Positions 13,527 to 51,949 of a stretch of 64,000 nt of DNA are shown in pieces. Location of the stretch: positions 8,804,001 to 8,868,000 of the forward strand of contig JANJGN010000035.1 of NCBI GenBank assembly GCA_026770705.1, read 5' to 3'. The notes under the pieces are model-generated. The model saw nothing but the letters and a program-made list of their open reading frames with translations. It searched no databases and was not told the DNA's origin. This DNA comes from Isurus oxyrinchus (taxonomy: Eukaryota). The stretch's first letter is position 1; each line of letters starts with the position of its first letter. The translations under genes and the position numbers were made by a program.

Positions 13527-13614
13527 TCATTCTGTACGCATAATCAAATTATCCGATACATGAGGTGGCTTAAGGAATTTCCGCCCTTCTCTCGAAATGT
13601 TATTGTTCCCCAAC
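13527..13614 (-). CDS. NLR gene terminal coding exon (LRR cap): (L)LGNNNISREGRKFLKPPHVSDNLIMRTE*
   Basis: Strong acceptor ctcccatatttttcag|GTTGGGG; phase 2 matches the preceding exon; LxxNxIS LRR motif completes LKEIL-L-GNN; too short for the ORF track. Confidence 0.8.
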
Positions 13615-13749
13615 CTGAAAAATATGGGAGCATACAGAAAGAATCTATCATTAAGGTATTCATTCTATGATGCATTCTGAATAATGATGCTGCTATATTG
13701 CAAACAATTATTTAACATTCAATGCTTACTCTTTTCTCGACGATAGGAC

Positions 13750-14760
13750 ACAGGCCGCGCTAGCATGGCCAGTGTTTTTTTTTTGCCTATCATGCCTTGC
13801 CGTTAAGAAAATGGTTGTGCCTCAGTTTCCTGAATCACTGAATGTATGCTGTCCGACGATCAAGAAGCTACGTATGAGGAAATTTGTGAATTTATCATGA
13901 GATCAAGAAAAAAAGGGTATAATGTTCCGAGTGATGCTGCTGCTAAAAAAAAGAAGACGAGACTTGGATGTCATGCTGATATGTCTGCATCATTCTCCTT
14001 CTTGTTAATAGATGTTTCAGGTTTTCAAGATGTTCTCAAAGGGGACTTGCAGAGATAAAAATGTGCATTCTAGCTGTGGCAAACAGTGCCTCTACTGTGC
14101 GCTGGAGGAACGGGAGGGAATCTTTTAAGGAGGCGGATGGGGTGCGAACGATTTGTCGTATTAAGTGTAAAACATCTTGATTGTGGTTGAAGCTGATGTA
14201 ATTAGGTAATTGGGAAATACTTTTCCATACCAACATGCCATTTTAAGATACTGAATGCTTTTCTGAAATCAGGAAGTGAATGAATCACTGCTGATGCCCG
14301 AACCACAAGCCACTTTCTGAGACAAATCCTGACAAATATTACAGAAGAGAACAACTGGCCAATCTGATCAGCCAGCCTTGCTCCAGCAAGCCTCCCAGCT
14401 TTCCTCACCTATATCCATCAGCCTGAATCTTACATTTCCTTTATATCCATCATATCTTTCCATTAAATGTTTGCATTGCTTTAACTGATAACATGGGATG
14501 AGGCTTCTCTGGAAATCTAGCATTAATTGAACATGCTGATCTGCACATAATAAGGGACTACAGACACAGCTGCATAAACAATGCGCCCACATGCTGAACG
14601 ACCACCCTAATTGCTGCCAGGAAGGGTTTCCCACGATATTGACCTAGTATCAGTGAAGGAACTGCAAAAGCCTTCCAAGTCACAATTAAATCTGTCAGGA
14701 AGTGGATATGGAAGGCGATGGTGTTCACAAGCATCTACTGCCCTTGTCCTTCTATGCGGT
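13750..14760 (-). mobile_element. Decayed LINE (CR1/L2-like) 3' fragment(s)
   Basis: Reverse-complement similarity to the LINE 3' ends at 23670-24470 and 44400-45300. Confidence 0.5.
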
Positions 14761-16743
14761 TGAGCTCACGGGTTTGAATGATACTGGCGAAGAGCATATT
14801 AAAGTAGGCATATACATTATTGCTTAATAAAAACAATCTCACAAAACTTTTCCTCTTGAACTCATAAGGCGAAGTTCTCAAGAATGCAACATCTAATGGA
14901 AATTTCAATTTATATCGCATTGGAATAGGTTCATGACAGTTTTGCACAATGACTTCTTTTGGTGGATGTGTTGATATAGAAATACACCGAAGCCTTGCTT
15001 TATGCCAAGCTTTATTTAAAATCAAACAAGGAGCGCGATATTGATTGGTAAGTGCATCATCCAATCCCGTGAATTCAGACACATATAAGGACAATGCAGC
15101 AGGTGCTTCTGAAATTCACCGCCTTCAAAAGCCCCTTCAAGGCAGACATAATTGTGACTTTGATTGCAGTTCCCTCACTGACGCGAGGTCAAATTCATGG
15201 AACTCCCTTCATAACAACAAATACCGTGGCCTCGTATCACATGGACTGCAGTGTTTCAGCAGCTGTCTCAGCACCGCCTTCTCAAGCGCAGTACAGCATG
15301 TTCAATAAACGTTGGTTTTCCACTGTTAAACGGTCAAGGAATTGATGTTAATCCAGCTTTCTTTAGTTCACACAGGTGGAAGGTGTTGACATACTCTTTC
15401 TGTTTGTGAAGGGCAGGACTCAGCGTGCAAACCCATGTCACGTCTCCCAAGCCAAAGTGAGCCACATTGAGTGTGACTGATAATATTAAATTACCTGCAG
15501 GGCAATTGTTACCACAATCAGTGTTGTCCAATCACGGAAACATGTCTGATGTTGGACACAACGTTACAAATTTTGCAAGTAGCTCTGAATACAGTCAGTG
15601 GTTTGCATCTTTCAAACAATCGAATGTAGTGTGCTGTTTGATGCAATGCAACAGTCATTGGGACTTATGGTGTGCATACCAGGCATGACACCAGTACTGA
15701 CATACCACGCTACTCACATCCGTGATAGATTGAATGTCTTTCTGACTTGTGCGGTAGCATCCATTTAGTGGTTGATCGTACTGCTATACCAAATGCAGCG
15801 TGAAACATCTATATTCAACTGCTGATCATTTTTTATGGATAATTTAATCTTGCAGGGTAACCTAAATATCACTGGGCACGTTTCAGAAGCAGAAATGGTG
15901 ACCTTAGGCCCGGACATGTTTTTGCACGATTATTAGTTGCATAATCAATGTCACCATGGCACATACACAAGGGTAACCCACAAAACGACTCTATTGTCAC
16001 ATTCCACAAAACGTGAAGGTGCCACTGAAACAAGCTATTCTTAATGATGGGTCAAAATTCGTATCCGTTGGCACTGCCGCTAAACATAACGCTACAATCT
16101 TGATTGAAAAGAAGTTGCACAATAGTTCATTTGATTTATGTAAGAGTAACAATGTGCATGTTGCTGTCAGGCTCTTGTTCCTTCATGAGTATTTTGGATA
16201 GTTCTGCTAATTTGGGGAAAGTATCACAGCGTTAGAGAGAAGGACTTTGGAGGGCAAGCTGACGTTTCTCTTGTCAGTTTGCTTTTGCATTATTGATTCA
16301 ACAGGATGTTTAGCACAGCTTATTCTAGGTCACTTATGATTCAAAGACGTTTCTGCAAATTTCGAAACTGATTTTATGAAGACCAGGTAATGACGGCTGG
16401 TTTACTTTTGTAAAGGCAATCGTTCATCAGCTTGTTTCTAGTTGCTTTTCTTAAGGTTTGGCGAACACAAAGGGGACAGGATGTATGCTATTTTCTTGGT
16501 TTTAAAATCCATGTAAAAAAAAACAAACGCAAACTGTTGCAATGTTTTTCGCTGGATGTTACCTCAGCGTTTGAAAATATAATGAATAGCATAGCAACAA
16601 CCTCATCATGCTACCTTCAATTTAAGTTATTAAACCATGGAATTATGAATTTTCATGTCAAAAAATCTGATATGAAAATCGTACAGAAATATATTCTACG
16701 TTCGAACCAGCATGAAATTAAGAAGCAGGTACTGCAAACTCAC

Positions 16744-16935
16744 AGAATTTCTTTCAGATACGTGTTCTTATGGCTGAGTTGCTGCAATGCTGGAATAGAT
16801 TTGTCAGTCAGCAAGTTAGCCCAATCGCCCTTCGGGCTTGCATTACTCAGGTCCAGTTGCATCAATGAACGATTTAACATGAGAGCAGAGATCAAGTTTT
16901 CCAAGCAAGCATCTGTGAGATTGTTTGATTTTAAC
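16744..16935 (-). CDS. NLR gene LRR exon (192 nt, phase 2-2): (R)LKSNNLTDACLENLISALMLNRSLMQLDLSNASPKGDWANLLTDKSIPALQQLSHKNTYLKEI(L)
   Basis: Acceptor tttttccttcacaacag|G, donor CT|gtgagt; ribonuclease-inhibitor-type LRR motifs (LxxNxLTD, NRSLxxLDLSxN). Confidence 0.92.
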
Positions 16936-17689
16936 CTGTTGTGAAGGAAAAACAATACTGACATAAAAATAACAGCAAGTACAAATCAAATTAGATATTA
17001 CGACCAAATGATATATTACAATTTCAACATTCGAAGGAAAAGCCTGCGCATGCACAATCCAATTTATTTAACATCATAATTATTACTATCCCATGATAAA
17101 TCAAAACCAGTATTTCTTAATACTTATTCCCACCATATATATATATATATTTTTTAACAATCAACTGACTTCTACACTATATTTGTGCTTCCCGATGCTT
17201 TAAAGCCAATTACTCACTCCAATCTCTGTATTTTCGAATCCGTTTTGTTCAGTGCAGCAGAGATCTGTTCCATTCCCGAATCTCCAATTCCATTTCCATT
17301 CAGCCTAATCATACACAAACAGAATGAATAATTCCTATGGAATTATACATCAGTTTGCAATTATTCGCAAATAAGCAATATGTTTAACTGGAGCAATTCC
17401 GGTCATTGAGAAGTCAATGTAATACTTGTCATTCAAACTAAATAGCTAATCGGGCATGGGGGCGGTAGTATACAGCAATGCTGTAATGCATATCAACATA
17501 TTTTGCAGACGGGCAAACTATCTAACATTCAGTCCATCAATCCTTGTTCTAGGCATCTTACCGTACCTTATTACAGGGCCAATGCCTGCATGTGGGTGGG
17601 GGGAGTGGGCTAGCTCAAAGACAAATGTGATTGGGCCGTGGTGTATGGTATAATTTTTTTAAAGGATGAAGCAAGCTGGAAAGTGCGTT

Positions 17690-19140: not shown

Positions 19141-19642
19141 TTAAGAGGACAAATTCTTAGACTTCGCAGTGACTTGTATTCGGAAAATCCTGCGTGAATT
19201 GTCGTGTAACTGAAGACAACATATTGGTAAAAGGATTGGAACAAATGCTCGATACGCAGAAATTTTCACTTATTTCAAAGCAAAGTGGAGTGTAAAGCGC
19301 TGACAACTGCACGATTGGTGGAAATCCCTCCGATTATAGAGAATGAACTGTTCTCCCAACACAAACTAGCATAATCTGATTAGATCAAAATGGACTACAT
19401 CGCAGTGCTACAATTTGATTCCAGTGTATTATAATTGTGCACAGGAAGAAGATGTGATGCTTACAACAGCGATTCCAATGTATTTAAAATGCGTGATGGT
19501 GTGCTCGGATGCTATTCAAAAATATACTCAGCTGCTTTTTTCACCTGTTGTTTTAGTATTAGTTGCTATTGCAGAAAATACTCCATCATGTAGTGCAACA
19601 GTTATTGATTAAAACGGTCATTTAACACTTTTGATGAATTAC

Positions 19643-21353
19643 CTGAGTATGCGTATTTTAGGCAGTATGGGTTCCAGCTGATAGATGCCCTCCTGTTGTA
19701 CAGCACAAGTACTGAGGTCAAGCTCTTCAATCAGCTCAACGTCCATTAAACAGCTTGCGAGCACCGCACAATCAGATGGTTTTAGGTAACATTTTGTGAA
19801 TTTCATTATCTTTAGCGGTGATAATGCGCTGGTCGTCAGATTTCTCTTCCCAAATTCATGAAGGTAATGCAATATTTGTAAGGTCGTGCGTTGGCTTAGT
19901 CTATCCTCCAGGTTATGAACAAATCGTTCGCAGCTGTCTTTGAGCCAATCCGACAAACATGACGGTATTTCTGGAGCCGGTTCGCACAATTCATACTCAA
20001 GGTTTGCAACTGACCCCCCTGATGAGAGGCCAAAAATAAATCGTGACATCATCTCGAATCTATTGTCAGTGCACAAGCACCATTCCTGAAGCAATCGTAC
20101 TAAATCATGTCCTGGTCTACGTTGACTTTTCATTAATGCTGCGACAAAGTCACGCATCAGTGAATGGGTAAATTTGTAGACAACGCTGGACTGATCTTCT
20201 TCCTGAATTTCCATCATAATTGTTGCTATAATTCTGGAAAGGTTGATGTTGTGCAGATTGATTTGACCAGCCTTAAACACAGCAAGATTGTTGCAAATTC
20301 CCTTGTAGGCCAATTTACCTAGTGTTAGCAACTCTGTGTTTGAGTTATCTGTCGCATAGCCGCATCGATTTAAAAGGCATGTGAAGTAAGCCGAGAAGAA
20401 ACATGTGTCTGGTATGAATAGATGTGTCCAATTTCCTTTTGACAAGTGCATTTCCAATAATGAACAAACAACGGAGCAGTACAGAGGGTTATAACACATG
20501 CCGTATATTGTTTCATTACACTCAATGTATTTGATTGCATCTGTAGCAGGTTGTTCATCGCCAAGAAACCGGCTAAAATATTCTCTTGTCCTCTCGGGGG
20601 TGAAACCCAGTATTTTGCCACATAGATTTATGTGTGCCTTTTCTAAAGATTCTAGTTTCCAAGGACGGCTTGTTGCAAGCACAGAGCAACCTTTCAACAA
20701 CTGTCCTTTTATAATGCAGCGCACAATATCAGCTGTTATGTAACAGCACTCAGGATTGATACATTGATTTTGGAGATCCTTGTCACTTTGTGTATCGGCG
20801 AATTCAATAGGTGGCTCAATTTGATCTAAATCATCAAATATAAACAATATTTTTGCTGGTTCATTCCACAGATGTCCCAATCGGTTTTCGAAATCGGGGA
20901 AGGAATCAAGGATCAGATCATTTAAACTTGTTTTCCCCTGTATTGAATTCAAATGTCGAACCTTGAAAGGAAAAATAAATTTAACTTGTTGCCATAATTT
21001 TCCCTCAGACCAGTCATGAATTATTTTCTGTATCATGGTGCTTTTTCCAATTCCGACCGCCCCGATGATTACCGTGGTGTAAGAGGTTCCTGTGTCAGCT
21101 GAACTGTTTTCCATTATATGAGAGAACTGAATTTCTTCGGGAGCCTCCGCCGATGTAATTTCCTTCAACTCTCGACCCTGTGCTTTTTGTTCATTTTCCA
21201 CAAGTCTCCGCGAACGCAATGGAGAAACAATCCTTAGTTCAGTATATATTTCATCCAATGAAAGTTTTCTGTATTTTTTGCCTCTTGTCACATTTCCAGT
21301 TGTCACCATCATATTCTTCTTGCGAAGATTGTCTTTGTGTGTTAGCTCTATTT
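19643..21353 (-). CDS. NLR gene NACHT exon (1711 nt; pre-NACHT linker, NBD, HD1, WHD, HD2, first LRRs); NLRP3/NLRP12/NLRC3-like chondrichthyan-type NLR
   Basis: 584-aa ORF; Walker A GAVGIGKST (21063-21037), Walker B ILFIFDDLDQ (20850-20821), sensor-1 LATSRP, MCYNP, WHD YKFTH, HD2 RFIFGLS, LRR IEELDLSTC; acceptor gaatcaag|AAATAG (phase 1), donor AG|gtaatt (phase 2). The track's ATG at 21393 is intronic in this model. Confidence 0.97.
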
Positions 21354-23669
21354 CTTGATTCAAGGTAAGTAAAAACGATATTAGTGTAAGCATGGTAATT
21401 TAGAAGACAAATATTTACAGAGCACTTCTGTAGAAAGTGTAAGTAAACTTGTAGAGGTATATGTTTAAAGAAAACAATCTGTTGATAAAGAACGAGACCT
21501 GAATATTGAGTTCTCACGTTATGACAGAGGATGCAAACAGTTATTGTGCCAGATTACATTTTTGGGAAACAGCCTGCAGATTCGAATGTTTAGATCTCTT
21601 AAGGGGGGCGCATACCTATTGCACAGATATATGCAATGAATAACACCAAAATAAGAGGCCATCATGTTATCGAATTATTCAAATGCAATGGGAACGGAAT
21701 ATATTCAGAGCAGCGGATAGTTTATATTTCAGAATGGCACGTGAGTACAGTGATGACAATTTGTCAACAGATTCCCTGAAATAATTAATTATAGCAGCAG
21801 TTATGAAATGAAGGACTATCCCGTGTCCAAGCTGTATAAATTCTAGAATGTTTATTTATAGGTGCTGGAAAGGCAGTATATGTATTAGCTCACAGAAGCG
21901 GAATTTCGGTCTTGCCTGAAGATTTAAATAACATGGAAACGTGGTAAATAATCCATAATTTTAACAGCACCTGTGTGAAATGAAACTGAGTTAACATTTC
22001 GACACTGTGACGTTTCATCTGAAGAGTGAAAAGCTTGAAGTGTCATATGCAATGAAGAAGTGAAAAGACGGACTGTAGGAAAAATCAAAGGGGAAAATCT
22101 GCGCAAGAGTGGAGGACAGGAAAAAAAGTAACAAGGCAATAAAGCTCTCACGTGCAATGTTAAATAAATGTTACGTAACAAGTTATCAAATAAAATATGT
22201 TGTCGAAGAAGCTTGGATGGTGATCTGGCTGCGTCCAGGTGCAAGATATTAAACATATAAAAGAAAGAAAATGGAAATCAGCAAAACAATTAAAAATACA
22301 CAGAGGCAAAATTTGCAGATTATTAATGAGTTGAATTCAAAAGTGCTATGATTCCATATATGCGAGTAGTTTCTCCTTTCTCGTCACGTTGACCTGGAAA
22401 TTCATTGGGCTATTTCAGCAAGCCAAGGTTTGAAATCTCAATATGGCAGCATGTGAAGTAAACAAATTAGCGGCGAGTGAAACCTTAGGGTTATATTATT
22501 GACTGCATGGCGTTGAACTGCAGTGCAGTCAGGAAGTTTGCATCTTGTTTGATTATCATAGAGAAGTCTACAACTTGAGCAATTAATACACTTTATTAAA
22601 TTGAAAAAAATAAGGTGAAGGGCTTCGCTCTTTCAAGAGGAACGTCCGTTCTGTGCCTTTGACCTGGAAAATGGAAGAGATAGAATGTCATTTGTTGCCA
22701 TTGCTGTGATGGAATGGCAAAGCGCCAGCCAGTGAACTTTGGGATTGCCCTGCCTTCATTCAACAAATAAAAGGATAATTATCAGAACGCGGAACTTGAT
22801 GAAGTGGCAACGACAAAAAATGTTTATTCAGTTACTCTCTTCAGATGCTGTTCAACTGCTATGTGCTTTTCCACATGGTATGTTGTTAATAAAACCGTAA
22901 ATAAACGTTGTTGAAGATAGATCACCTTTGATGTAGACAAAGGACATTGTTGGCGCCAGAAACTGCAAGGTGCTGATATCCCGGAGCAGTTTGGATATTT
23001 CGTGGATGTCGGTTGCAAGAGACTGGACAACAGTAGAAAAAAATGTTCCAGGAAACCAGCAATTAGTTCAGTGGAGCAGAAAAATGGAATGGGGTTACCT
23101 CCATATTAATTCGTAAAGAACTGTTACTGAGTTAAAAACAGTGTTCTCTGCGATGTGTAAGTGTGAGATTGCAGCCAACTGAGGGAAGATCAACGAACAA
23201 ATTATGTTACTGGAGATCCTAAAAACAATAGTTTGTTCATCGTTTGGTGTGGTCATGGTCAATGTTGGGAAGTGGAGGCATGAGCAAGCTGTAGCAAGCT
23301 GACGTTCACCAACTGCGAGGTGGATGTTGGTATTCCAGCCGGTATCCAGATTGAGCTGATCAGCATGTTTTATGATAATCTTAACGTTAGACCTGGGCTG
23401 ACAGAGTCGCATTTTGAACGCAACAGATTGGGCTCACATTTCCACTGAAGTCCAGGCTTAGACTGAACGCGCCCTTGAACCAGAGGGGCTGTCTGCAAAA
23501 ATCGATTCACCCTCATTTGCAGACTTTTTTTCAAAGCAGATATTTTTTTCCATTCAAACTTTCACGGACTGCCATGTAGAATGCTGAAACAAGTTCCACA
23601 ATGCATACTCCTTATCCTCTGAAATTACGCTCCGTTTACCATGCAACTACGCTACCGGACCACCCAAAT

Positions 23670-24470: not shown

Positions 24471-24649
24471 AGTATATCTATTTATCCATGTGTCTACTGC
24501 ATATTTATGAATGTATCTATCTATCCATCTGCCTATCTATCTACCAACCTTTCTATCTGCCTGTGCATATATATCTCTGCCTGTCTGGCTACCTGCCTCT
24601 CTGGCTAATTGTCTCTCTGGCTATGTATTTGGTACTTTTGATGTTGCCT

Positions 24650-27810: not shown

Positions 27811-27973
27811 CGTCTACCATCAATGATTGATCATTTTTATTTTTCTGCTTTTGCTTGGTGTTCTGCAGTTTAAGGGTTTTTCTTTCTTCCCGAGCCCCAT
27901 TTTCAAGCAAGGTATTAAGAATGACCTGGCAAGCCTCCTTCCGTTCATGACTTTCACCTAGGTTTCTGATTTT
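27811..27973 (-). CDS. NLR gene exon (163 nt, phase 0-1), second half of CARD-like death fold: KIRNLGESHERKEACQVILNTLLENGAREERKTLKLQNTKQKQKNKNDQSLMVD
   Basis: Acceptor atcttctactttcag|AAAATC, donor GACG|gtaggt; EACQVILNTLLENG fits the CARD helix-5 pattern (A.xLLxxLxxKG); phase joins the NACHT exon. Confidence 0.75.
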
Positions 27974-29072: not shown

Positions 29073-29227
29073 NNNNNNNNNNNNNNNNNNNNNNNNNNNN
29101 NNNNNNNNNNNNNNNNNNNNNNNNNNNNNNNNNNNNNNNNNNNNNNNNNNNNNNNNNNNNNNNNNNNNNNNNNNNNNNNNNNNNNNNNNNNNNNNNNNNN
29201 NNNNNNNNNNNNNNNNNNNNNNNNNNN
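29073..29227. other. Assembly gap (155 N) inside an NLR intron
   Basis: Run of N. Confidence 1.
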
Positions 29228-31780: not shown

Positions 31781-31920
31781 AAAATTACGTGGAAAAACAC
31801 AGCAGGTCTGGCAGCATCTGTGGCGAAAAAAAGAGTTGATGTTTCGAGTCCTCATGACCAGAACTAGGCGAATGCCCGGAAGGGCTGAAATATAAGCTGG
31901 TAAAAGGTGGTGGTGCGGGT

Positions 31921-31954
<34 letters not shown>

Positions 31955-36496: not shown

Positions 36497-36660
36497 CTTC
36501 TGCTCATTGAGCATAGCCGATTGGAAACAGCTCTGAAATACATGCTCAACGAATTTTTGAGTTTCCAATTCCAATGCTTGGCGGTAGGATTCGATATTTA
36601 TATAGCGTTTAGTATTCGTGCGGCTCGGTCCTTTAGAATGCTCATCGATAACTGCACATT
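36497..36660 (-). CDS. NLR gene exon (164 nt, phase 1-0), first half of CARD-like fold: (E)CAVIDEHSKGPSRTNTKRYINIESYRQALELETQKFVEHVFQSCFQSAMLNEQK
   Basis: Very strong acceptor tattcttttttacacctttacag|AA, donor AAG|gtgtgt; open frame; bridges the phase-1 TM exon to the phase-0 exon at 27973; YRQAL...V..V......ML.E resembles CARD helices 1-3; absent from the ORF track. Confidence 0.72.
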
Positions 36661-40051: not shown

Positions 40052-43000
40052 TGAGACCATAAGGAGTAGGAGCAGAAAGTAGGCCATTCGGCCCATGGAT
40101 ACTGCTGCGCTATTTAATCATGGCTGATAAGTTTCTCAACCCTATTCTCCCGCCTTTTCCCCGTAACCTTTGATCCCCTTTCCAATGAAGAACCTGCCTA
40201 TCTCTGTATTAAATACATTCAATGACCTAGCCACCATAGCCTTCTGTGGCAATGAATTCCATAGATTCACCAGTCCCTGGCTAAAGTAGTTTCTCCTTAT
40301 CTCTGTTCTAAAAGGTCTTTCCTTTTTTTCTGAGACTGTGCTCTCGGGTCCTAGTCTCTCCTACTAATGGACACATCTTCCCCACGTTCACTTTATCCAG
40401 GCATTTCAGTATTCTGGAATTTCAATCAGATTTCCCCTCATCCTTTGAAACTCCATCAAATGTACATCCTCAAGCGTTCCTCATATGTGATCATTTTGGT
40501 GAGCATTCTCTGGACCATCGCCAGGACCAACACATCCTTCCTGAGACACGGGGCCCAAAATTGCTCACAGTATTCCAAATGTTGTCTGACGAGAGCCTTA
40601 TAAGGCCTCAGCCGCACATCCATGTTTTTATATTCTAGTCCACTCGAAATAAATGCAAACATTGCATTTGCCTGCCTAACTACCGACTCAACCTCTAAAT
40701 TAACCTTAAGAGAATCCTGGTTTAGGACTCCCAAGTCCTTTTGCACTCCACATTTCTGAATTCTCTCCCCGTTTAGGAAATAGTCTATGCTTCTATTCAT
40801 CCTACGAAAGTGCATGACCTCACACTTCCTCACGTTGTATTCCATCTGCCACTTCTTTGCCCATTGTCCTTACCTGCCCAAACACTTCTGCAGCCTCCCC
40901 GCCTCCTCAATACTACCGTTCCCTCCACCTCTCTTTTTATCATGCGCAACATTAGTCAGGATGACCTCAGGTCCTTTAACTAGATCATTAATGTATAAAG
41001 TGAAAAATTCTGGTCCCAACACTGACTGCTGCGGAACTCCACTAGTCTCCGGCCACCATCCTGAGAAGGACCCACTTTGCCCCATTCTCTGCCTCCTGCC
41101 AGACAGCTAACTGCTATCCATGCCAGTACTTTGCCTCTAAAACCATGGGCTCTTAACATACTGAGCAGCCTCCTGTGCAGCACCTTGTCAAAGGCGTTCT
41201 GGAAGTCCAGTTAGCAAGCATCATTTGGCTCTCCTTTCCCTAAACCACTCGTTAACCCCTCAAAAAATTCTAACTGACTTTTTAGGCATGACCTCCCCTT
41301 GATGAAACCATTCTCACTTTTCCTGATTTTTCAATGCACTCCAAGTATTTCGAAATCTCATCCTTAATAACGGACTCTAAAATCTTAACAACGGCCGATG
41401 TCAGGCTAATCAGCCTGTAATTTCTGGTCCTTTGCCTCACTCCCTTCTTAAAGTGGGGGGTTACTTAAGCGATTTACCAGTCCTCTGGGACGCTCCCTGA
41501 CTCCAGTTATTCCCGAAAGATCACAATTAACGACTCTGCTATATCTTTAGCTATATCCATCAGAACTCCGGGGTGTAATCCATCTGGTCCAGGTGATTTA
41601 TCCAACTTCAGACCTTTCAGTATTCTTAGCACCTTTTCCTTGGTACGGGCCACCAGAATCACCTCTGCCCCCCGACTCTCTTGAACTTTGGCGATGACAC
41701 TTGTATCTTCCACTGTGAAGACTGGCGCAAATTACCTCATGAGTTCCTCTGCATTTTCTTTGTTCCCATCTACGACTTCTCCAGCGTCACTTTCCAGCAG
41801 TCCAATGTTCACTTTTGCCTCTTTCTTGCCCGTAATATTTCAAAATAAACCTTTGCTATCTTCTTCTTTGTTACTGGCTTACCCTCATATTTAAACTTCT
41901 CCCTCTTTATTTACTTTCCTTTGTCCTCTGTTGGTCTTTGTAGGCTTCCCAATATCGTGATTTTCCCATGCTCTTCACCGCATTGTCTGCTTTCTCTTTA
42001 GCTGTAATGCTGTCCCTAATTTCCCTTGTAAGCCATGGTGGTCACGTCCTCCCTTTAGCATGCTTCTTCTTGCTAAGGGATGAATTATTTCTGTGTGTCC
42101 TAAATTACTCCCAAACGCCTGCCATTGCTGTTCCACTGTCTTTCCTTCCAGGCTCATCTCCTTTCTATTCTGGCCAGCTCCTCCCTCATGCCACTGTAGT
42201 CGCCTTTATTCAACTGTAATACCTTTAGATCTGATTCCAGCTTTTTGCACTCAAATTGCAGGGTAAATGCAATGATAATATTATTGTCACTTCCTCGTAA
42301 TGGTTCATTCACCTTAATCTCACTTATCAAATCTGATTCAAATGAAAAAATCTGCCGATGCTCAAAATCCAAAACAAGAACAGAATTACCTGGAAAAACT
42401 CGGCATGTCTGGCAGCATCGGTGGAGAAGAAAAGAGTTGAAGTTTCGAGTCTGCCTCGTTACACATCATTAAATATGGGACGGCCTGTTCCCTAGATGGC
42501 TCCACCACAAGCTGTTCCAAAGAGCTATCACGTTGACATTCCACAGATTCCACATCGAATCTGATTTTCCCAGTGTACCTGCATATTGAAATCCCGCATA
42601 TTCACTGTAACCTTGCCTTTCTTATAGACCTTTACCATCACCTAGTGTATCTTGTGCCCCACATTCTGACTAATGTTCGGAGTCCTGCACATAACTCCCA
42701 TTATGTTATTTTTTTTTTTAACTTTGCGGTTCCTCAACTCTCCCCACACAAATTCTACCTCATCTGACCCTACATCATTTCTTGTTATTGAATTAATTTA
42801 ATTTCTTACTAACAAAACAACCCCATCCCATCTGCAAACCTGCCTATCTTTTCGATGGGATGTATATCCTTAGATATTTAGCTCCCAATCCTGATCCCCT
42901 TGCAGCCATACCTCCATAATGCTCACCACATCATTCCTGCCAATTTCACTCTGTGCCACAAGCTCATTTACCTTATTTTGTATATTGCGTGAATTCAGGT

Positions 43001-43505
43001 GCAACACCTTCAGTCCCGTATTTCCCCTCCCCTTTCTCATCACTGTCCCTTTATCGGATGTGCTTGCAGGTAGATTGCTAGCCCTTTGCAAACACTCTGA
43101 CTTATTTTTCTGTTCTGCAGATTTTAATAGCCTCTCCTGGGCTGTCCTTTCTTTTCAGTTTTTTCATAATTCTACATGAAGTTGAATCCAACCCCACCTT
43201 CACCCAGCACCCCCCACCCCTCCCCCCACACGCTAACCCGCTGCTTTCTTTCCCATTAGTCATAATTCGTGGATTGTTACCGCTTCACCCCCCACCCCCA
43301 GTCACTTTCCAGTTTAAATTCCTGTTTGCCACCCTATTTAACTTTCTCACTAGAACATTGGTCCCAGATCGGTTCAAGTGGTGATCGCCCCAATGTTATA
43401 GATTCTTCCTATTCCAACACCGATGCCAGAGCTCCACGAAATGGAATCTTCTTCCCTGTACTACTCCTTTAGCCAGCTGTTTATCTCCCTTATTCTCACG
43501 TCCCT
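40052..43505 (-). mobile_element. Long, relatively young CR1 LINE (ORF1 esterase end, ORF2 endonuclease and RT, 3' UTR); internal deletions and frameshifts
   Basis: LHLNSRNIQNKVNEL..DVVSIMEVWL (EN); LKLDKSPGPDGLHPGVL; TSGVPQQSVLGPEFFTLYINDL; YKALVRQHLEYCEQFWAP; 3' end gggccgaatggcctactttctgctcct. Confidence 0.95.
42350..42450 (-). mobile_element. Short Penelope terminal fragment nested in the CR1
   Basis: aaaacaagaacagaattacctggaaaaactc..gtctggcagcatcggtggagaagaaaagagttga matches 31785-31850 and the reverse complement of 33215-33320. Confidence 0.8.
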
Positions 43506-46500
43506 TGAACAAGTAACAGGAGGAAGTGTCTGCATAATTATTCTCAACGGCAATAATGGGGTAGCCAAGCACATCCGTACAAGTGTCAAAGCTGAAGCAT
43601 TTGCAAACAAATAATCAGGAGGGTTCAGTTGATGACCCATCTTGGCATCTTCCTGCTGTGAGTAACATCACAGCCGCCAGATATCAGCCAATTCGAATCC
43701 ATCATGTAGAACAAATAAATGGTTGCAGTTGCTACATACTACCTAAGGCTATGGACCCTAATACAATACAGCTGAAAACATGCGCTCATGGATGAGCCAG
43801 GTCCAGAGGCAAATTTTTAAAGTAAAGCAAAAAAACAGATATCTATCCAGCAACATTGGAAGCTGTGAAGGTATATCCTGCCACAAAAAAAAAGGTAAAC
43901 CGAAAGTAGCCAAATAATGCTACGTTCGCATGCTCTTGATTATCAGCAAACAGATGAGAGGTATTGTGCAACGTGCTATGAAGTAGCACATAATCATCAA
44001 AAACCTTCTCATTTATCTTCAGTTTACATCCTTCCAAGGCCACACGGCTCCCCAGAGCATTTCACTTCAAGCCCAAACACGGCTAAAAGAGCTGAAATTA
44101 AAAGATGATGGAGAGTTACGAAAATTGACATCAAGGACACGTTTAACCGTACAAGGCATGAATGAGCCCTGGAAGAAGCTGAAATCAATGGGAATCACAG
44201 GCAAATGTTTTACTTTTTTGGAGAGCAATCATGCACAAAGCAAGGTGATTTTTAATCCTGGACATCAACAATCTCGGACCAGTGACATCGTTTTTGGAGT
44301 TCTTCAAGATAATATCTGAAGACCTGATGCCCTCCATTATTTTAACAATGACTTTCCTCTATGAAAAAATTAGGTGGGTTAGTAGTTTGTTTGGTGAAAG
44401 GGCGGGGAGGGTGCAGTTGTGATGACTGATGATTGCACGAACGCTAAGCACCATTCCCGACCCCTCAGATGCAGATGAAGTCATTGATCATAGGGAGATA
44501 GTTGTGAATATTCGTTTTTGGCTGAGTCGCAAGAAATATTCATGCCGTACCAGTTCCAGAGAAGTAACATCTCCAGCATTTCAGAAGCTATTCAGTCTCT
44601 CTTGAAACTGAGTGGCAATATCATAGCTGAATAGCTGTCAACTTCGAAGGAAAGGCGATTGGTCGGGATATCAGCTGGGCAATCCGTGTGATTAATGCAG
44701 TTAGCTCAGCAGGAAAGGAGCTGTTACATGTGCGGTGAGAAACTCACCTACAGATACCTCAAAGGCCATCTACGATCTTTAGGCCTGATGTCAAAATTGT
44801 GATTGGGACACTTAGCCAGTTGTCGAATTATTGCAGTTCCATCAACACACAAGGAGCTCGCCAACATCAAGGACAATGCCGCCGGTTTGATTAGTACCAT
44901 GTAGAACGCATTGACCTTCAGGCCCTCCACCGTCGATGCATATTAACAGCAGGGTGTCCAAATCCAAAATGCCCTGCTACAACTCAGCTGGGGTCCTTCG
45001 GCAGAACCTTTGAAAACCCAAACCTCATCAATACAGAAGGACAAGGGAGCAGATCCAATGGAGCAAAGTTTCTTTTCCTTTTACATTTGCTTTACCCTTC
45101 AAGCCAGACGCATTTCTGCTTGAGAGCTATGTCTTTGCTCCTGCTCTATCGCTGGGAAAAAGTCTTCATCTCTATTCTTGTGCATTTTCCTATGTAACAC
45201 TGTCTGCAGCAGTTGATGCAGGCTGCTAGGTGTCAATTTCACAAAGGGGTTTAGAGATGGGCAATAATATGTTGCTGGCAGCAATCCTCGCATCCAATAA
45301 TGGCATAAGCAATAAGATAAAAGAAAAAAACCTTTTCTAACATGTTTGCTCGTCAGTGTTCTGGCTTCTACTTCTCTCTTTCATATCCTTTATTTTTACC
45401 TTAATGTGTAGTACATTTTTTCAGCTCCTGCGTACTATCTCCATGTTGAGTGCTTAATTTGTCTTGCCGCTAACACCTTTAGCATCTGTCTTTCCGAATT
45501 CAATTCAATCTTGCGTCCTAACCATGTCATTTTACTTCTGAACAAACAGGTTAAGGGGCTAAACTACCTTACATTTTTTGGAATGTGTGCATTTTCCTCA
45601 CCATTGCTCCATATCGTCTGAATTGACAGTCATCCTATCCCACGTGCTCTTATACCAAAAGGGGCCCTTGAATTTCTTTCTGTTAATTTTTCAGAAGTTT
45701 CTTAGATGTTTAGCTTTTGATCTGCATAATTTCATGCCTTATATGCTTGACAATTAACCAATATTTTCCTAAAATGTCATCACATTTCCCAACTTGCATT
45801 CCTATCTATCCTACGCAATGTACGTTAGTAATAGCAAAAACAATCTTCTGAGTTGCTTTTGCCCACCTTAATTCAAGAGCATAAATGCAGTAAATTGTAA
45901 ATGTGCTCATTTAACTTAATCCAACGTTTAAATCACGCCTCGCAGATCTGCTGCTTAAATCCAAATGAAAAACGCAGGAGCGATTCCACACATATACCAA
46001 AATAGCATTAAAGCATTGGAAAAAATTCTGGTGATTATGTTGGCTGCATCCCCGTTTTACCTGTCGATTTTCAGCAAACTAAATCTTATATGGAGGACTT
46101 TGGCCTGGGAAGCGTTCTCGTGATGGTCAAAGGAAGCAGTGCCATGACAGCCTGAACGTTTTACCTAGGAACTCTGGTGTCAAATTCTAGGCCTGGCGGA
46201 CGCTAGACCATGATTGCTTAAGGTGGTGTAAAAAAATAAATATGTTGCGTCCCCCTTCCAAACCAAGCAAGTGAAATAGGCAGATGGAAAGCAAACGTTT
46301 AGGAAATCCAAAGCCAGCAACCCTACAAAAACTCAATCGCTTGGAGAATTCTGTCAGATTTGCACAAGCAATTTCCAGAATCAAATGTTTCTTATCAATT
46401 TGGCCTCATATTAAGAATCCTATCAATTAACCCATACCATGAAGACCGTTATTTTCCCGTGTAAACATGAACAGTAACATATTCTTGTATTTGGTGCCCA

Positions 46501-47549
46501 GAGCTGAACAGAGTCAGGAAGCGGATAGAATAAGCTTTTGTCTTGCTTCAGGAAACATCTATCCCCAAACCACATCCTGCTCCTATTCAATTACAAATGT
46601 TCTTTATCATTTATATTACTTTGATCGTTATCGTCACCATCAGTTTCTTTATTTGATATGTTGATCTTCAGGACAAAATAAAATTGATATGACAACATTG
46701 ACTAAGTAAGCTTATTGGAATCAGATCACTTTTTCTTGTTGATGATTATTCATGCCTTCGTTATCTGTCCCACCGTGGATAACATAAGTCTTTCCGTGTC
46801 TAAAATCCACATTTTCACCAAACTTTTAATTGATCAAGCTGCCCTACCATGTCCTCGCATAATGGCTTAATATGGAATCAATATTTAAGGAAACTTGAAT
46901 ACTTTTTAATACATTGTTCTCTATTGTTTTCCTGTGTTATTAACGAAAAGTTTATAGTGTACCACAGCAGTCTACAAAAGCCAAGAATCACTTATTTCCT
47001 CGAAACATTCTGAGAAACAAATGATTGCGCCTTCGAAAGGAATTTAACATCCATCCTAAATGTTGTTGCCAGAACAATAGCATAGTTGAGTACTACCCAG
47101 AACATTATAGCCTTTCAACAATTTTCTTATTTTGCCAGATTATGAATTTCAAGATCCCATATGCTTTGCTAAATATTGGCATATTATGCTTTTCAAGCTT
47201 CAAGGATCCATGCACATGGTATCCATTGTCCCTCTGTCTATGCTTAAAAGAATACTTTCGCAAAAAATGTGACTGTGGGAGCAACGTTCTCTAACCTCGT
47301 CCAACCTTAAAGACAATTTACCATGTTTTCTGGCATTATCTCCTCTGTCTTAAATCACTTTGTTATGGTTCTCCCTACTCATTGAAATTAAATTGAAGTA
47401 ATCATATGTTTACGTAATATGTTGTGTAACGATTTATTCAAATGCACATAGTGCACCAAATGCATTCTCAGCTTGAAAGCTGCCAGTTCCATCGTCGGAA
47501 ATGCCAGTTTGAAAAGCCAAACAGGAGGATGAATAAAACTGTTGCTCAC

Positions 47550-48870
47550 TGGCAGAGAGTTCTGCCCCCGGAAGTCGGCGGCATTGTGAATTCCGGGTCA
47601 GCAGTCACTGCGCCCTCTGTAAAATGGGAATTTCAGAAAATTAGCGGCAAGCATGGAGTCAGTCCTGTCATCCCACGATATAAGTTTTGGGGCCCTGTCT
47701 CTGAGACTGGGACAGTGGCTTGGGACAAGATAAACGTCAGAGTTTTATGCGATCGCCTTTAACAGATGGTGGCAGTTGATGCATCAGATGAACAGTCGAT
47801 TGCATCTACTATGTATAATGAATTTCCCTTTTGGCCACGTAGGTCGATTTAAATTTTAGCTACTCTGTGCAGGCCATGTTAAACTTGAAAGTTGACAGAA
47901 GTTTTAAATTTAAGCAAGTTTCCACTTTTTGGCACTGGGGATTTGTACAGGTATTTCAAGTAATCATGGAGAGTTCTGCGCCAACAATGCGAGATGGGAG
48001 GCGTTCAAAAAGGGGCTAATGTGCCCACATATTCTGCAAGGCCACACTTAGTGCCCTGTTGCATGTGGCACATGAGAGACGCCAAATGTTTATGCCGACC
48101 ACTAGGAAGATAAGGGTGCACAGGCATACCCCTGTTCCGTGGGAGCAGACGGTCAGCGAGATAAAAGGGGTTCTTGTGACAAAGAGGAAATTGGCCCAGT
48201 GCCCCACAAGGGCATCATGAGATCACTTCCTGTATATCGCTGAGTAAGTTTGTCGATGCCTCCGCTGAGTGTTTCATTATTGATCAAGACCTTTGGAAAC
48301 TGATGCCTTACTGTGCCCATGTTAAGTAAAAACAGCACCGTGTGCCCCCCACATAGCGATTCTTATTTCCTCTCACTCTTGCCCCTTACTACTCCTAATC
48401 CTTCTTTCCTCCTCGTTCAAAACTGTGCCTCAAGTGACACAAAAATCTCCATTTTTCTGAGATTTTTTTCACCCCTCAGACCTGCGTACTGGGCAGGAAA
48501 CTAAGCAACGGAGCCCAATGAAGTAGAGCAAAGGTCTCCTCAAGAAAAATACCCAAAAGTTTCCTCTGTCTAATCAAATGAGCAGTGACTGCAGCCAATA
48601 GATTTTGAACTGCAAAGTGAGACCCTGGTCTCAACTGCAAGCTTTAAAGCCGTCCAAAGAAGACTGCCGTTAAAAAAGGGGCTTCCCGCATGCCAATCAT
48701 ATCGCCAGATGGCGTACTATTGCATTCTGGCCGTATTGTTCCTGTAAAATGGGCATTTAATTATTTGAATTGCCTTTTGAGTTGGCGCTTAATTAACGGG
48801 CCCGAATTCCGGGCTTTATGACGTGCCCGCTGCCGTCTTCTCAAAAAGTGAGGGAATGACGTTTCAACAG
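47550..48870 (+). mobile_element. Decayed Harbinger/PIF-like DNA element with Myb/SANT-like remnant (~48020-48230)
   Basis: AHIFCKATLSALLHVAHERRQMFMP...PWEQTVSEIKGVLVTKRKLAQCPTR fits Harbinger Myb/SANT (RFSxxxLxxLV...AWxxV...RTxxQC); GC/CpG-rich ends. Confidence 0.5.
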
Positions 48871-49326
48871 CGCCAGAAGTCTACATGATCCATGGAACAC
48901 ATTGTAAGAAGGAAACGTTGTCGATCTCCGAGCTTAAGCTTGAGTCCATAATGAGAGTTCTACAAGTCTGAGCCTGTTCTCCTTAAATAACTGAAAACTC
49001 TCCGATTTTTATTATTGTTTCTCCTCTTATTATTGTTTAGGTAACCTTACCATTCCTAATGTGAAGCTGTCCATTCGTGGGTTACTTGGAATCCATCTGG
49101 GCTACTTTTTGTTAATACCTCGCTGAAAGTAAGCCTACTGCCTCTCTCTACAAAATTCGAATTTACATTCCAGTAGATGACCTGCAGATCGTTTTTAAGT
49201 TTACTGCCATTCTTTTCTTCCTCGATCCCTGTTTTCCTCTACTTCACTTGTCAACGTGCTTATTTTATTTTCTTTTATTTTATATCATTTTAATTTAATT
49301 GACTTGTCTTCTTTTGAATAATTCAC

Positions 49327-49503
49327 CTGAATTCATTTCTCCGGTCACTTCAGGCAGTTGCTCGTAATCCTGACTCGGTTGATACTTCCGTTTTGCACAT
49401 TTGGACGCTACATAGCCACTGACAGCTCCCGAAATGATTGCACTACCGACGGCTATCAGCACTGCTATCCATTCCTCGATCATGTTTGCAGTATCTTCAA
49501 CCA
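49327..49503 (-). CDS. Transmembrane exon (177 nt, phase 1-1), putatively of the NLR gene: (V)VEDTANMIEEWIAVLIAVGSAIISGAVSGYVASKCAKRKYQPSQDYEQLPEVTGEMNS
   Basis: Acceptor ttttttggtttaacttacag|TG, donor TCAG|gtgaat; ~22-aa hydrophobic helix followed by basic KCAKRK. Confidence 0.75.
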
Positions 49504-51805
49504 CTGTAAGTTAAACCAAAAAACGTCTCTGAGTTGCTAATGCTCAATAATTCAACTGAGAGTTAGTATATTCTAGACCAGGCTGAATTATTTCAAAATT
49601 CAGGTGCGATATCTTAATTTTCAAGTTTACTTTTTGGATAGCATTTCAACTTTTACTTTTATATGCTCTGAAGCATTAAATGATTTTCGTTGACCATCAA
49701 TAATAACCTTACGCATTTATTCAACTGTTTTATGAAACACATTGACGAGTTGTGGACGATATGTTTATCAAATGGAAAAGTGGAACAGTACTGATTTTAA
49801 TTAGTATTGATCATCTTTTAATGCTAAAAGAAGTGAGCATTCTACACCAAACTGATTTACCATTAGCAACTCAAGCTATTATTTATTTGCTTACCGCCGT
49901 TGAGCCCAGTCCACGTATTTTGTCATCATAGAATTCTTTGGCATACATTTTAACAAACAAGTAATAAAGTCACAAAAACAGTGACATTGTTCGTTTTAAT
50001 TTTTATTCTGTGATTTTTGTGAAAAAGGAACTGTTTCAAGTGGGTCCACCGAGAGGTCAACCAATGGTCTCATGAAATTCTCATACATATCATTGCATTC
50101 AAATTAAATGCATAGCTAATCTGGATGGAATAAGATGGAACTTTACATGTTATGCATTTCTTGACACTCAGAGTGTGCAAGAAAGATTCCGATCACAGGA
50201 TATTATTATTGGACTGTTCAGGCGAGAATAAAACAGCCAAATGCATTTACTCCAAAGGGAATGGTTGTAGCTCAGTTAGCGAAAACAGACAAGGCCATGA
50301 AAATCACAGTAACTGAGAGGATACGAATAAGGGAAAATTAATCTCCATACCTTGCAGTATATGTCCACAAAACAATTAACTAACAATGACAGCTAGATAA
50401 GATGGACAAAATGATAAACAGAAATGATGCTTGATTGGTCAAGCGTAGAAAATATGAACTAGTTGGTGTCACATAAGTGTGTAAATTAATATTTAGTTTC
50501 AAGAAGCGTGTTACATCAAAGGTCTGTTATTACATTACTGTTCACAGCAGATAATTAGGTGTAAGTTGAAAAAGTTGAGAATTTTAGCTATGAAGGAAAG
50601 GTTAGATCGGAGGAATTGTTTCTTCCCAATATGAGGGAACATTTAATTGATACATATGACGTTATAGACTGTTTTAGATGCAATGGTAAGGAAATTAACT
50701 ATTGCCCTTAGCATTGAAGTGAACAACCCCGGCTACAGGGTGGAGGGTAGGGTGGCGTTGGGGATACACTGGACAAAAAAATGTGGTTATTTAAAGTGTT
50801 AATAAACGGTTGAGGAAATATGATTTTTTATCCAATCATGACTTGGTTTCTGGAACTTGTGGATTGAATGGATGTCGCCTTTGGTGGGTTATTTTCTGAT
50901 GGTTCGCTGAAACTAAATGAATGTTGCTGGTATGATGTGGATCTCTGTTAATAATCCTACTCCATCATTAGCCGATCTCAAGACATTTATGCACAATTAT
51001 AGACTCTTTGCAATGAACACAATCTCTAAACAAATGTATATTGAAAGTAGAAATTCATTTGATATTTGCTTGTACTTCATTTTATGCACAACTGCCGTGG
51101 AATCAAGTCAGCACTTCTGTATTCGTTGCTTTTGAACGACATGAGCTGCCAGAAAGAGCAGTAAAAACTGGAACTTGTTAACAATAGAGCATTATTTTAA
51201 GTCATGCAAATTATCATACCACTTATGCATTTTTTTTTAAGTTAACAGACATCAGAGTAAAAGTTCACTATACTTGTAAATATACTGTGTTCAACAGTTA
51301 TAACATTTGCAGATTAGTTAAACAATGGAAGCTAGATAAGCTTACAATTCTGTCGCTAAAATCGGAATGTGTTTGAGGGAATTCGTTCAATGAATTAAAA
51401 TGAACATGTTACACGATTGGGACAGGGATGATGAAAGGCGTGAGATGTAAATCTGCAAAATAAATTTACTATTCAATATTGACGTTTGATGAGGTGGGGT
51501 GGCGGGCGGAGTGGGGAGCGGAGGACAATTATAACAACAAAATAATAGCAACCTGTTCTAAAGATGGTAAACTTAGGAAAATATTTGCAAACAAATACGG
51601 AGTATTTTTTGTTTTAACAAAAGCAGATGCAGCAAAGGCGTGAGTTAAGTGAGAAATATATTTAGTCCCGTCAACAGTGTGTTTCAGCTGTCGTTTAAAG
51701 AATTAGATGCTTTCCCTTGAAGACAGCCAGTGTATATTTCTTTCCCGACGTTAAACACAACCAGTTTGACACTATTTGCAACTCCTGTAGCAGGAATGAA
51801 CTTGC

Positions 51806-51949
51806 CGGTTCTGTTTTCTTGTGTGGCCTTAAAGCAATCATTTTCTCCATAGATTTTCATAAAAACTACAATTAGTAATCCCAGCAGAAAACTTAGTAGC
51901 AACCAGACATATCTGTGTCGAAATGGCATGGATGCAGCAACAGCAATCA
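51806..51949 (-). CDS. Signal-peptide/TM1 exon (144 nt; ATG at 51929-51927): MPFRHRYVWLLLSFLLGLLIVVFMKIYGENDCFKATQENRT
   Basis: Strong acceptor ttctattttatctcttgcag|TG; GC-type donor ACCG|gcaagt in phase 1 matching the 49503 acceptor; basic n-region plus Leu-rich h-region. Confidence 0.6.

Follow-up and report, generated by a model that had tools for sequence, protein, structure and literature searches.

Proteins of the NLR type sense danger and float free inside the cell in all well-studied vertebrates, but several of them are brought to membranes. NLRP3 is a peripheral membrane protein held by a polybasic region and lipidation. Membrane association matters for its activation, and versions tethered artificially by TM helices or lipid anchors still respond to triggers (PMC12117088). 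NOD1 and NOD2 act at membranes after S-palmitoylation, and NLRX1 is directed to an organelle by an N-terminal mitochondrial targeting peptide. NACHT proteins with built-in TM helices are described in invertebrates. Those of Anthozoa (Nematostella, Acropora, sea anemones) are proposed to be membrane bound, in papers which state that other metazoan NLRs are cytosolic (PMC5094078, PMC3879445), and sea cucumber AjNLRC4 and AjNLR-new were shown experimentally at the cell membrane (PMC13133943). In the papers that we could search we found none on a vertebrate transmembrane NLR, and none on the shark and ray gene family discussed here, although automatic RefSeq models of its members already show the architecture.

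Here we analyzed a window of 64,000 nucleotides of the shark Isurus oxyrinchus (assembly GCA_026770705.1, contig JANJGN010000035.1, positions 8,804,001 to 8,868,000 of the forward strand). An earlier note, made from the sequence alone, had proposed that seven minus-strand exons in this window encode an NLR with two hydrophobic N-terminal helices, a CARD-like domain, a NACHT, and a minimal LRR, and that this protein is an integral membrane protein with its CARD-NACHT-LRR part in the cytosol, which could be an undescribed membrane-tethered innate immune receptor or adaptor.

Results

The observation in the earlier note holds. All seven exons are present on the minus strand (124+177+164+163+1711+192+88 = 2619 nt) with phases 1/1/0/1/2/2, and they join into one open frame with a single stop at its end. 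Every acceptor is AG, and every donor is GT except that of exon 1, which is GC (CCG/gcaagt). As the note had said, no minus-strand open reading frame of 45 aa or more in the ORF list overlaps exon 3 or the last exon. The note gave no coordinates for the 192-nt exon, which we placed (Table 1), and it missed one LRR exon of 87 nt. We found the latter by tblastn with the relatives P0001, P0005, P0007, and P0010 (numbers refer to database relatives; P0001 is Scyliorhinus torazame XP_072354258.1). It has usable splice sites (ttag/G and GGA/gtgagt) and is similar to a stretch in 27 of the 34 database relatives at an E-value of <1. Because 87 is a multiple of 3, the seven-exon frame had stayed open without it. 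The revised model has 8 exons, 2,706 nt, and 901 aa, still with a single stop, and spans about 38 kb. The only run of N in the window lies in intron 3, 7,270 nt after the exon 3 donor and 1,100 nt before the exon 4 acceptor, so no exon or reading frame crosses it.

Table 1 Features of the membrane-anchored NLR gene model (positions in the window)
Feature	Position	Strand	Length (nt)	Phase	Content
Exon 1	51806..51929	-	124		ATG at 51929; basic N-end MPFRHRY; hydrophobic stretch (core 51908-51852), either a signal peptide or a first TM helix; start of a short acidic ecto-segment with one Cys and an NRT sequon; GC donor
Exon 2	49327..49503	-	177	1-1	Acidic juxtamembrane stretch with in-frame Met (ATG 49483-49481, A at -3); TM helix WIAVLIAVGSAIISGAVSGYVAS (49471-49403); then KCAKRKYQPSQDYEQL (YEQL at 49366-49355)
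Exon 3	36497..36660	-	164	1 to 0	Probable N-terminal half of a CARD-like death-fold domain
Assembly gap	29073..29227	.	155		N run in intron 3
Exon 4	27811..27973	-	163	0 to 1	C-terminal half of the CARD-like domain (KIRNLGESHERKEACQVILNTLLENGAREERK), then a K/Q/N-rich linker
Exon 5	19643..21353	-	1711		FISNA-like start, NACHT (about 21078-20557), winged helix, HD2, first LRR
Exon 6 (new)	17218..17304	-	87	2 to 2	One LRR, LNGNGIGDSGMEQISAALNKTDSKIQRL
Exon 7 (192-nt exon of the note)	16744..16935	-	192		Two LRR units
Exon 8	13527..13614	-	88		Terminal LRR/cap and TGA stop
AATAAA	13415..13420	-			Polyadenylation signal, 107 nt after the stop

Exon 5 is a genuine NACHT/winged-helix module. The Pfam NACHT model matched with an E-value of 3.7e-27 and NOD2_WH with 26.3 bits (cutoff, 23.1), while NLRC4_HD2 and FISNA remained below their cutoffs. 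Walker A (GIGKST) and an acidic Walker B stretch are present. A search with exon 5 identified 34 homologues, the best of which is 51% identical. In the tree, exon 5 is sister to P0001 (51 to 52% identity; SH-aLRT, 99) inside a 25-row clade (100) that holds all 10 TM-bearing database rows; 14 of its 25 rows show no TM, and the 5-row sister clade has none. Exon 7 matched P0001 residues 849 to 911 in tblastn (E-value of 1e-17, 65% identity). The last exon gave only weak matches (E-values of 0.013 to 0.32), which fall at the very C terminus of 7 relatives.

Exons 1 and 2 each hold a hydrophobic 19-mer, with Kyte-Doolittle means of 2.62 and 1.95, respectively, and no other exon exceeds 1.28. However, of 2,183 six-frame stop-to-stop segments 73 have a 19-mer at 1.95 or more and 6 reach 2.6 or more. 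Hydrophobicity alone is therefore weak evidence for exon 2, and what counts is its homology to the TM exon of a relative. Exon 2, also hit by tblastn, matched P0001 residues 72 to 121 in BLASTP (E-value of 9e-9, 46% identity) and exon 4 matched residues 188 to 234 (E-value of 1e-10), in the same order as in this 934-aa model, which is built of a hydrophobic leader, TM helix, CARD-like domain, NACHT, and LRR. After its helix, exon 2 has a KRKYxPxxDYxQL tail, and an alignment of TM exons across relatives showed that the juxtamembrane motif K-[KR]-K-Y-x-P-x-x-D is shared with S. torazame and Heterodontus. A TM helix ahead of the NACHT (before Walker A) is present in 11 of the 34 relatives, 10 by hydropathy and P0010 by eye, from 10 species of sharks and rays. 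In the three clusters of P0001, P0019 (Mobula hypostoma XP_062892860.1), and P0005, 29 of 32 isoform models keep the TM helix while their first exons vary. These architectures of relatives are automatic gene models and not experiments.

Exon 1 rests on weaker evidence. Of 65 ATG-started open reading frames upstream of exon 2, it is the most hydrophobic of the two that passed the cutoff and the only one with a well-fitting phase 1 donor; this GC donor has otherwise good consensus flanks. However, a GC donor is rare, the ATG has T at -3, and the similarity to the leader of P0001 is no better than that of 1,936 of 5,000 shuffles, so there is no order-specific similarity to relatives. It is thus possible, although we consider this less likely than a start in exon 1, that the anchor is real but exon 1 is not the first coding exon, and that translation starts at the conserved Met in exon 2 (MIEEW...) to give a single N-terminal signal-anchor helix (N-end outside, NACHT inside), or that an unseen first exon is used. 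Consistent with this possibility, S. torazame isoform X4 (P0039) and a second S. torazame gene (P0037, P0038) start exactly at the equivalent Met (MDEN...) just before the TM helix, the exon 2 ATG has A at -3, and the isoforms of relatives vary mainly in their first exons. On the other hand, three S. torazame isoforms (X1 to X3) do carry a hydrophobic leader before the TM exon.

The evidence for exon 3 is also limited. It ranked first of 588 open, phase-compatible AG..GT candidates by a rough splice score, and it was the second best of 2,183 segments against the death-fold profile of the family, but with an E-value of only 2; 15 of 2,000 shuffles score as well. BLAST gave no similarity to P0001 (E-value of 11), and a search among 1.84 billion representatives gave 0 hits. 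The profile match covers positions 16 to 48 and runs straight on into exon 4 (from position 48), so no hidden coding exon is needed at the assembly gap, although one cannot be excluded. Exon 4 matched the same profile with an E-value of 2e-8, or 5.8e-6 with P0001 left out of the profile. The domain is only CARD-like, as it does not reach the Pfam CARD threshold either here or in relatives, and it looks shortened in this gene: exon 4 has a 4-residue gap where P0001 has FFEI, and the last helix region is replaced by a K/Q/N-rich stretch.

We looked for transcripts that would support the proposed junctions. None of the 5 listed sequencing runs of this species, which are small (49 to 116 million letters), of unknown tissue, and only guessed to be RNA, holds exon 5, and contigs of 4 runs compared with positions 46500 to 52400 gave only 33- to 47-nt scraps at 90 to 95% identity, away from exons 1 and 2. 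Hence, no RNA shows the junction between exons 2 and 3 in this species. The intron between them is 12.7 kb long and holds repeat-like open reading frames, and an open reading frame at 19639-21393 starts with an in-frame ATG 40 nt upstream of the exon 5 acceptor, which could start a NACHT-only product. Soluble isoforms are modeled in relatives (P0035, P0061, P0002, P0006), including isoform X5 of the closest relative. Exons 1 and 2 could then be a separate small membrane protein gene or dead exons, and the NLR would be soluble, starting from another first exon or from the ATG at 21393. We consider this unlikely, because exon 2 ends in phase 1 at a good donor without a stop and is homologous to the exon that RefSeq models place directly before the CARD-like exons of the sister gene. 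Moreover, exons 3 and 4 have no in-frame ATG near their starts and so need an upstream coding exon, exon 2 is in the right phase, exon 3 is the best phase-matching exon in the interval, and most isoform models of relatives retain the TM helix.

The absence of exon 5 from the listed runs could also mean that the gene is an intact-looking but silent or recently dead copy in a fast-evolving NLR cluster, in which case its architecture would have no present function. The shortened CARD-like domain and the low identity to the sister protein, a sign of the fast evolution of the family, would fit this view. However, given the nature of these runs silence is not shown, all 8 exons are open with usable splice sites over 38 kb, and the Walker motifs and the NACHT and WH scores are retained, so that this explanation also appears doubtful.

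Discussion

Our work supports in part the interpretation of the earlier note. Its central idea of an NLR with a built-in membrane anchor is supported by comparison with relatives, but the model lacked an LRR exon, the 'CARD' is below threshold, exon 1 may not be the start, and 'undescribed' holds only for the papers searched. With reasonable but not full confidence, we propose that an intact 8-exon gene encodes a 901-aa NLR of an elasmobranch-specific clade, whose members RefSeq names NLRP3/NLRP12-like. Our analysis establishes the exons, the frame, the domains, the homology of the TM and CARD-like exons, and the family-wide TM helices, whereas splicing in this species, topology, compartment, and signaling are inferred.

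In this view, exon 1 adds a hydrophobic leader and exon 2 a transmembrane helix, and the short acidic segment between them, of about 25 to 30 residues, would face the lumen or the outside. Everything after the helix would face the cytosol: a basic Cys/Tyr-containing tail, the shortened CARD-like death-fold domain, a lysine-rich linker, FISNA-like/NACHT/WH/HD2, and about 5 LRR units. The charge distribution agrees with this orientation, with 3 basic and 7 acidic residues in the loop and 4 basic residues in the first 6 positions after the second helix. We hypothesize that the anchor holds the sensor on one membrane, so that nucleotide-driven NACHT oligomerization happens in two dimensions and clusters the CARD-like heads to recruit a death-fold adaptor or caspase. 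The anchor would do permanently what lipid and polybasic contacts do transiently for NLRP3 and NOD1/2. Alternative starts may tune or remove the anchor: the conserved Met in exon 2 would give a signal-anchor form without exon 1, and later starts would give soluble forms, as in the isoform models of relatives.

The closest relatives are the elasmobranch RefSeq models named 'NACHT, LRR and PYD domains-containing protein 12-like' or '3-like', such as P0001 and P0019. They have a hydrophobic leader, a TM helix with a basic/Tyr tail, a CARD-like domain, a FISNA-like NACHT, and a short LRR in the same order, and exons 2, 4, 5, 6, and 7 all match P0001. However, the ecto-segment of the I. oxyrinchus model is about 40 residues shorter than in P0001 and has no Cys-rich part. 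Mammalian NLRP3 is likewise a FISNA-type NACHT-LRR sensor, and a basic stretch sits just before the FISNA region in both, but NLRP3 has a PYD instead of a CARD-like domain and many more LRRs. NOD1 and NOD2 share the order CARD(s)-NACHT-LRR but have no TM helix or leader, and by name and best hits the NACHT described here is nearer to NLRP-like relatives. NLRX1 has its targeting peptide and not a leader plus a stop-transfer TM helix. The anthozoan NLRs have N-terminal TM helices, but 3 to 5 of them, clustered and with a gap-junction-like signature, versus one helix plus a leader here; an independent origin is presumed likely. The sea cucumber proteins also have TM helices but combine Ig domains with the NACHT, which in one of them lies outside the cell, and no CARD-like domain or LRR is named in what we read of their description.

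Gene structure

The earlier note proposed seven exons that join in one open frame, two of which are absent from the ORF list. This observation held: all seven exons were found at the proposed positions, and the third and the seventh are indeed missing from the ORF list. Every acceptor is AG and every donor is GT, except for the exon 1 donor, which is GC (CCG|gcaagt). Translating each exon in its phase and completing the split codons gives one stop, at the end, and AATAAA follows 107 nt after the stop. The only run of N in the window is intronic, so no exon or frame crosses it, and we rejected the possibility that the gap breaks the frame.

The note's model lacked one exon, however. A tblastn search with relatives showed a further match at 17318-17217, which resolves into an exon with ttag|G and GGA|gtgagt sites and phase 2 to 2. 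It encodes one LRR unit that has a counterpart in 27 of the 34 database relatives. The revised model has 8 exons, 2706 nt, and 901 aa, and by eye it has about five LRR units, so the note's description of a minimal LRR stands. The tblastn search found no second NACHT gene in the window, and that reading was rejected. We also looked for an extra exon between exons 1 and 2; there are 9 open candidates, none with a good donor.

Coordinates of features in the window
Feature	Coordinates	Strand	Description
In-frame Met in exon 2	49481-49483	minus	just before the TM helix, A at -3
Broken ORFs in intron 2	40456-43263	minus	string of ORFs, e.g., GVPQQSVLGPEFFTLYINDL
Exon 3	36660-36497	minus	
Inverted repeat in intron 3	31859-32171 and 32917-33198		arms up to 229 nt, 86% complementary, 745 nt apart, each with a proline-codon-rich run
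ORF within the inverted repeat	32366-32692		108 aa, in the inner part
N run	29073-29227		in the intron between exons 3 and 4
Exon 4	27973-27811	minus	
Linker in exon 4	27811-27870	minus	lysine/glutamine/asparagine-rich (KLQNTKQKQKNKNDQ), just before the FISNA-like start of exon 5
ORF overlapping exon 5	19639-21393	minus	begins with an in-frame ATG 40 nt upstream of the exon 5 acceptor (stretch 21354-21393; MLTLISFLLTLNQ...)
Additional LRR exon	17304-17218	minus	87 nt

The inverted repeat in intron 3 is probably a transposon remnant; Pfam found nothing on its inner ORF. The broken ORFs in intron 2 look to us like pieces of a LINE reverse transcriptase, but Pfam gave no family at E up to 0.01 for the five pieces tried. 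In total, eight intron ORFs resembling retroelement pieces were searched, with no family found at E up to 0.01.

Domain content

Pfam was run on the exons one by one. Exon 5 contains a NACHT NTPase domain (E 3.7e-27; 95.6 bits against a cut-off of 26.7), with GAVGIGKST and ILFIFDDLD as the Walker A and Walker B sequences, followed by a winged helix (NOD2_WH, 26.3 bits against 23.1). NLRC4_HD2, at 27.4 bits, is below its cut-off of 33.1, and FISNA, at residues 5-71 of exon 5 (E 2.8e-4, 21.5 bits), is below its cut-off of 28.1. Nothing was found for the other exons, including the short LRR exons taken singly, but the latter do align to the LRR region of relatives, where P0001 (the closest relative, from Scyliorhinus torazame) has LRR_6 at 813-833 above its cut-off. 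The gene has the NACHT, winged helix, and C-terminal leucine-rich repeats of an NLR. The linker encoded by exon 4 recalls the basic stretch that precedes FISNA in NLRP3. The in-frame ATG upstream of the exon 5 acceptor means that an unspliced or internally started transcript could give a NACHT-LRR product without anchor or CARD-like domain.

A predicted membrane anchor in relatives

A search with exon 5 found 34 proteins. Thirty-one are RefSeq or genome-project models from 14 shark and ray species, one is from a frog, and two are unnamed; no protein of the window's own species appeared. The best, P0001, is 51% identical and reads hydrophobic leader, about 60-residue ecto-part, TM helix, KRKYKPKRDYAQL, a helical domain, NACHT, LRR. 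Exon 2 matches P0001 residues 72-121 (E 9e-9, 46% identity), and exon 4 matches P0001 residues 188-234 (E 1e-10), whereas exons 1 and 3 show no BLAST similarity to it. Searches of the 5.8-billion-sequence set with the N-terminal regions of P0001 (60-260) and of P0019, a ray relative (90-300), each found only the query itself.

A hydropathy scan (19-mer mean of 1.6 or more, before Walker A) marks 10 of the 34 relatives. The ray protein P0010 was missed only because its Walker A reads GKN, and its helix is plain by eye. These 11 rows come from 10 species, including the rays Pristis and Mobula. The same threshold also marked four segments inside the soluble parts of four rows, so scores near 1.6 are not specific. 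In the three 90% clusters of P0001, P0019, and P0005, 29 of 32 isoform models keep the helix while their first exons differ; the exceptions are a soluble X5, a 179-aa fragment, and one X7. NCBI generally reports extra isoforms only where transcript alignments support them. S. torazame X4 and a second S. torazame gene start at a Met just before the helix, and the window has the same Met in exon 2, which suggests a conserved alternative start giving a signal-anchor form.

An alignment of the TM exons shows that the basic/Tyr juxtamembrane tail K-[KR]-K-Y-x-P-x-x-D is shared by the window, P0001, and P0005 (the latter two from S. torazame and Heterodontus). The ray members P0010, P0019, and P0020 share a different juxtamembrane motif, GYE[NP][VE], after a Cys/Trp-rich basic stretch, and a tyrosine close to the membrane is thus a recurring feature of the family. 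The relatives P0008 and P0013 carry two or three TM-exon-like modules in tandem before the NACHT, which are either real exon duplications or merged gene models.

In a quick IQ-TREE analysis with SH-aLRT support only, from which P0029 and P0030 were left out as shorter than 500 aa, exon 5 is sister to P0001 (99). Both lie in a 25-row clade (100) that contains all 10 TM-bearing database rows, while the neighboring 5-row clade has none. Inside the clade the TM label is scattered: 14 rows lack it, several being partial models or other isoforms of TM-bearing genes.

Exons 1 and 3

Exons 1 and 3 rest on weaker evidence. In the 21.3 kb between exon 2 and exon 4 there are 588 open AG..GT candidates of the right phase, among which exon 3 ranks first by a rough splice score with approximate weights. 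A profile of the helical domain, built from six relatives, hits the exon 4 ORF at E 2e-8, or 5.8e-6 with P0001 left out. The exon 3 ORF is second of 2183 segments, but only at E=2; it covers profile positions 16-48, directly before the 48-82 of exon 4, and only 15 of 2000 shuffles of exon 3 score as well. Against this, exon 3 found no hit among 1.84 billion representatives.

Exon 1 is the more hydrophobic of the only 2 of 65 upstream ATG-ORFs that pass the hydropathy cut-off, and it alone has a phase-1 donor with good flanks, which is the GC site. However, its similarity to the leader of P0001 is no better than chance (1936 of 5000 shuffles). The Kyte-Doolittle means of the hydrophobic stretches are 2.62 for exon 1 and 1.95 for exon 2. 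As a control, 73 of 2183 random segments are as hydrophobic as exon 2 and 6 are as hydrophobic as exon 1, and we therefore rejected the argument that hydrophobicity alone proves exon 2.

The CARD-like domain

The note had described the domain before the NACHT as CARD-like. Pfam gave no CARD hit on exon 3 or exon 4 at E up to 1, and in relatives the CARD match is below the cut-off of 23.9 bits (P0001, 16.7 bits, E 0.0075; the relative P0024, 14.1 bits, E 0.049). A search of PDB sequences with the death-fold profile found no CARD, only designed helical proteins and gyrase at E 0.14 or worse. An Atlas search on P0001 residues 125-262 gave no usable hit, whereas the Atlas's own model of P0024 residues 125-222 is closest to CARD-bearing proteins (NOL3, RIPK2, FIIND-CARD, NOD2, and RIG-I; TM-score 0.67-0.74). 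The window's copy lacks four residues where P0001 has FFEI and ends at profile position 82 of 93. We call it a shortened CARD-like domain.

Topology and transcripts

The N-end has 2 basic residues. The loop between the two hydrophobic stretches has 3 basic and 7 acidic residues, plus a Cys and an NRT sequon, and the tail after TM2 has 4 basic residues in its first 6, so that a hydrophobic helix of about 19-23 residues is flanked in the positive-inside manner. We infer from this charge distribution that the loop is outside and the NACHT in the cytosol, whether exon 1 is a cleaved signal peptide or a first helix, and also if translation starts at the Met in exon 2.

A search with exon 5 listed five small sequencing runs of the same species label, none of which contains exon 5. 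Contigs of four of them, placed on 46500-52400, gave only 33-47-nt scraps and do not cover exons 1 and 2, which says nothing either way about whether the TM exon and the NACHT exon are on one mRNA.

Discussion

The gene is real and intact, and it most likely encodes a membrane-anchored NLR with a minimal ectodomain, belonging to an elasmobranch family that has not been described in the papers we found. The note's interpretation is partly supported: its model needed one more exon, and the CARD is doubtful. Our analysis establishes the exons and their open frame, the NACHT and winged-helix domains, the homology of exons 2 and 4 to P0001, and the recurrence of TM helices among relatives. Expression is putative, and splicing in this species, membrane integration, and topology are inferred from sequence and comparison alone, as is any cleavage of a signal peptide.

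Vertebrate NLRs are taught as cytosolic sensors, and how and where they meet membranes is an active question for NLRP3 and NOD1/2. A natural, genome-encoded TM anchor on a vertebrate NLR, conserved across sharks and rays, would show that evolution has hard-wired membrane tethering, and it would offer a simple system for asking what tethering does to NACHT activation. This gene, with almost no ectodomain, is the cleanest case for testing pure tethering, as opposed to ligand binding outside the cell.

A more far-reaching hypothesis, which we consider unlikely but cannot exclude, is that sharks and rays keep a whole clade of true transmembrane NLRs. In this view, shuffled phase 1-1 leader/ectodomain/TM exons, ranging from almost nothing in this gene to mucin-like or Ig-like ectodomains in paralogues, would be coupled to a cytosolic NACHT oligomerization engine, and alternative first exons would switch one gene between anchored and soluble forms. 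Such proteins would be a vertebrate receptor class that carries a signal from a membrane surface, or from one defined organelle membrane, straight into an inflammasome-type assembly, and the conserved KxKYxP...DYxQL tail would serve for sorting or phosphotyrosine control.

Our literature searches found no vertebrate NLR with a natural TM helix. The whale shark genome paper reports an NLRP-related expansion but uses "transmembrane" only for 7-TM receptors and once in a reference, although its supplementary NLR tables, which our reading did not cover, might list domain predictions. NLRP3 tethered artificially to membranes stays responsive (PMC12117088). Membrane-bound NLRs are reported for a sea cucumber (PMC13133943) and for anthozoans (PMC5094078; PMC3879445), and a natural anchor in this family would extend them from anthozoans and echinoderms to jawed vertebrates. 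The anthozoan proteins are described as having 3-5 clustered N-terminal TM helices, whereas the shark gene encodes one leader plus one TM helix.
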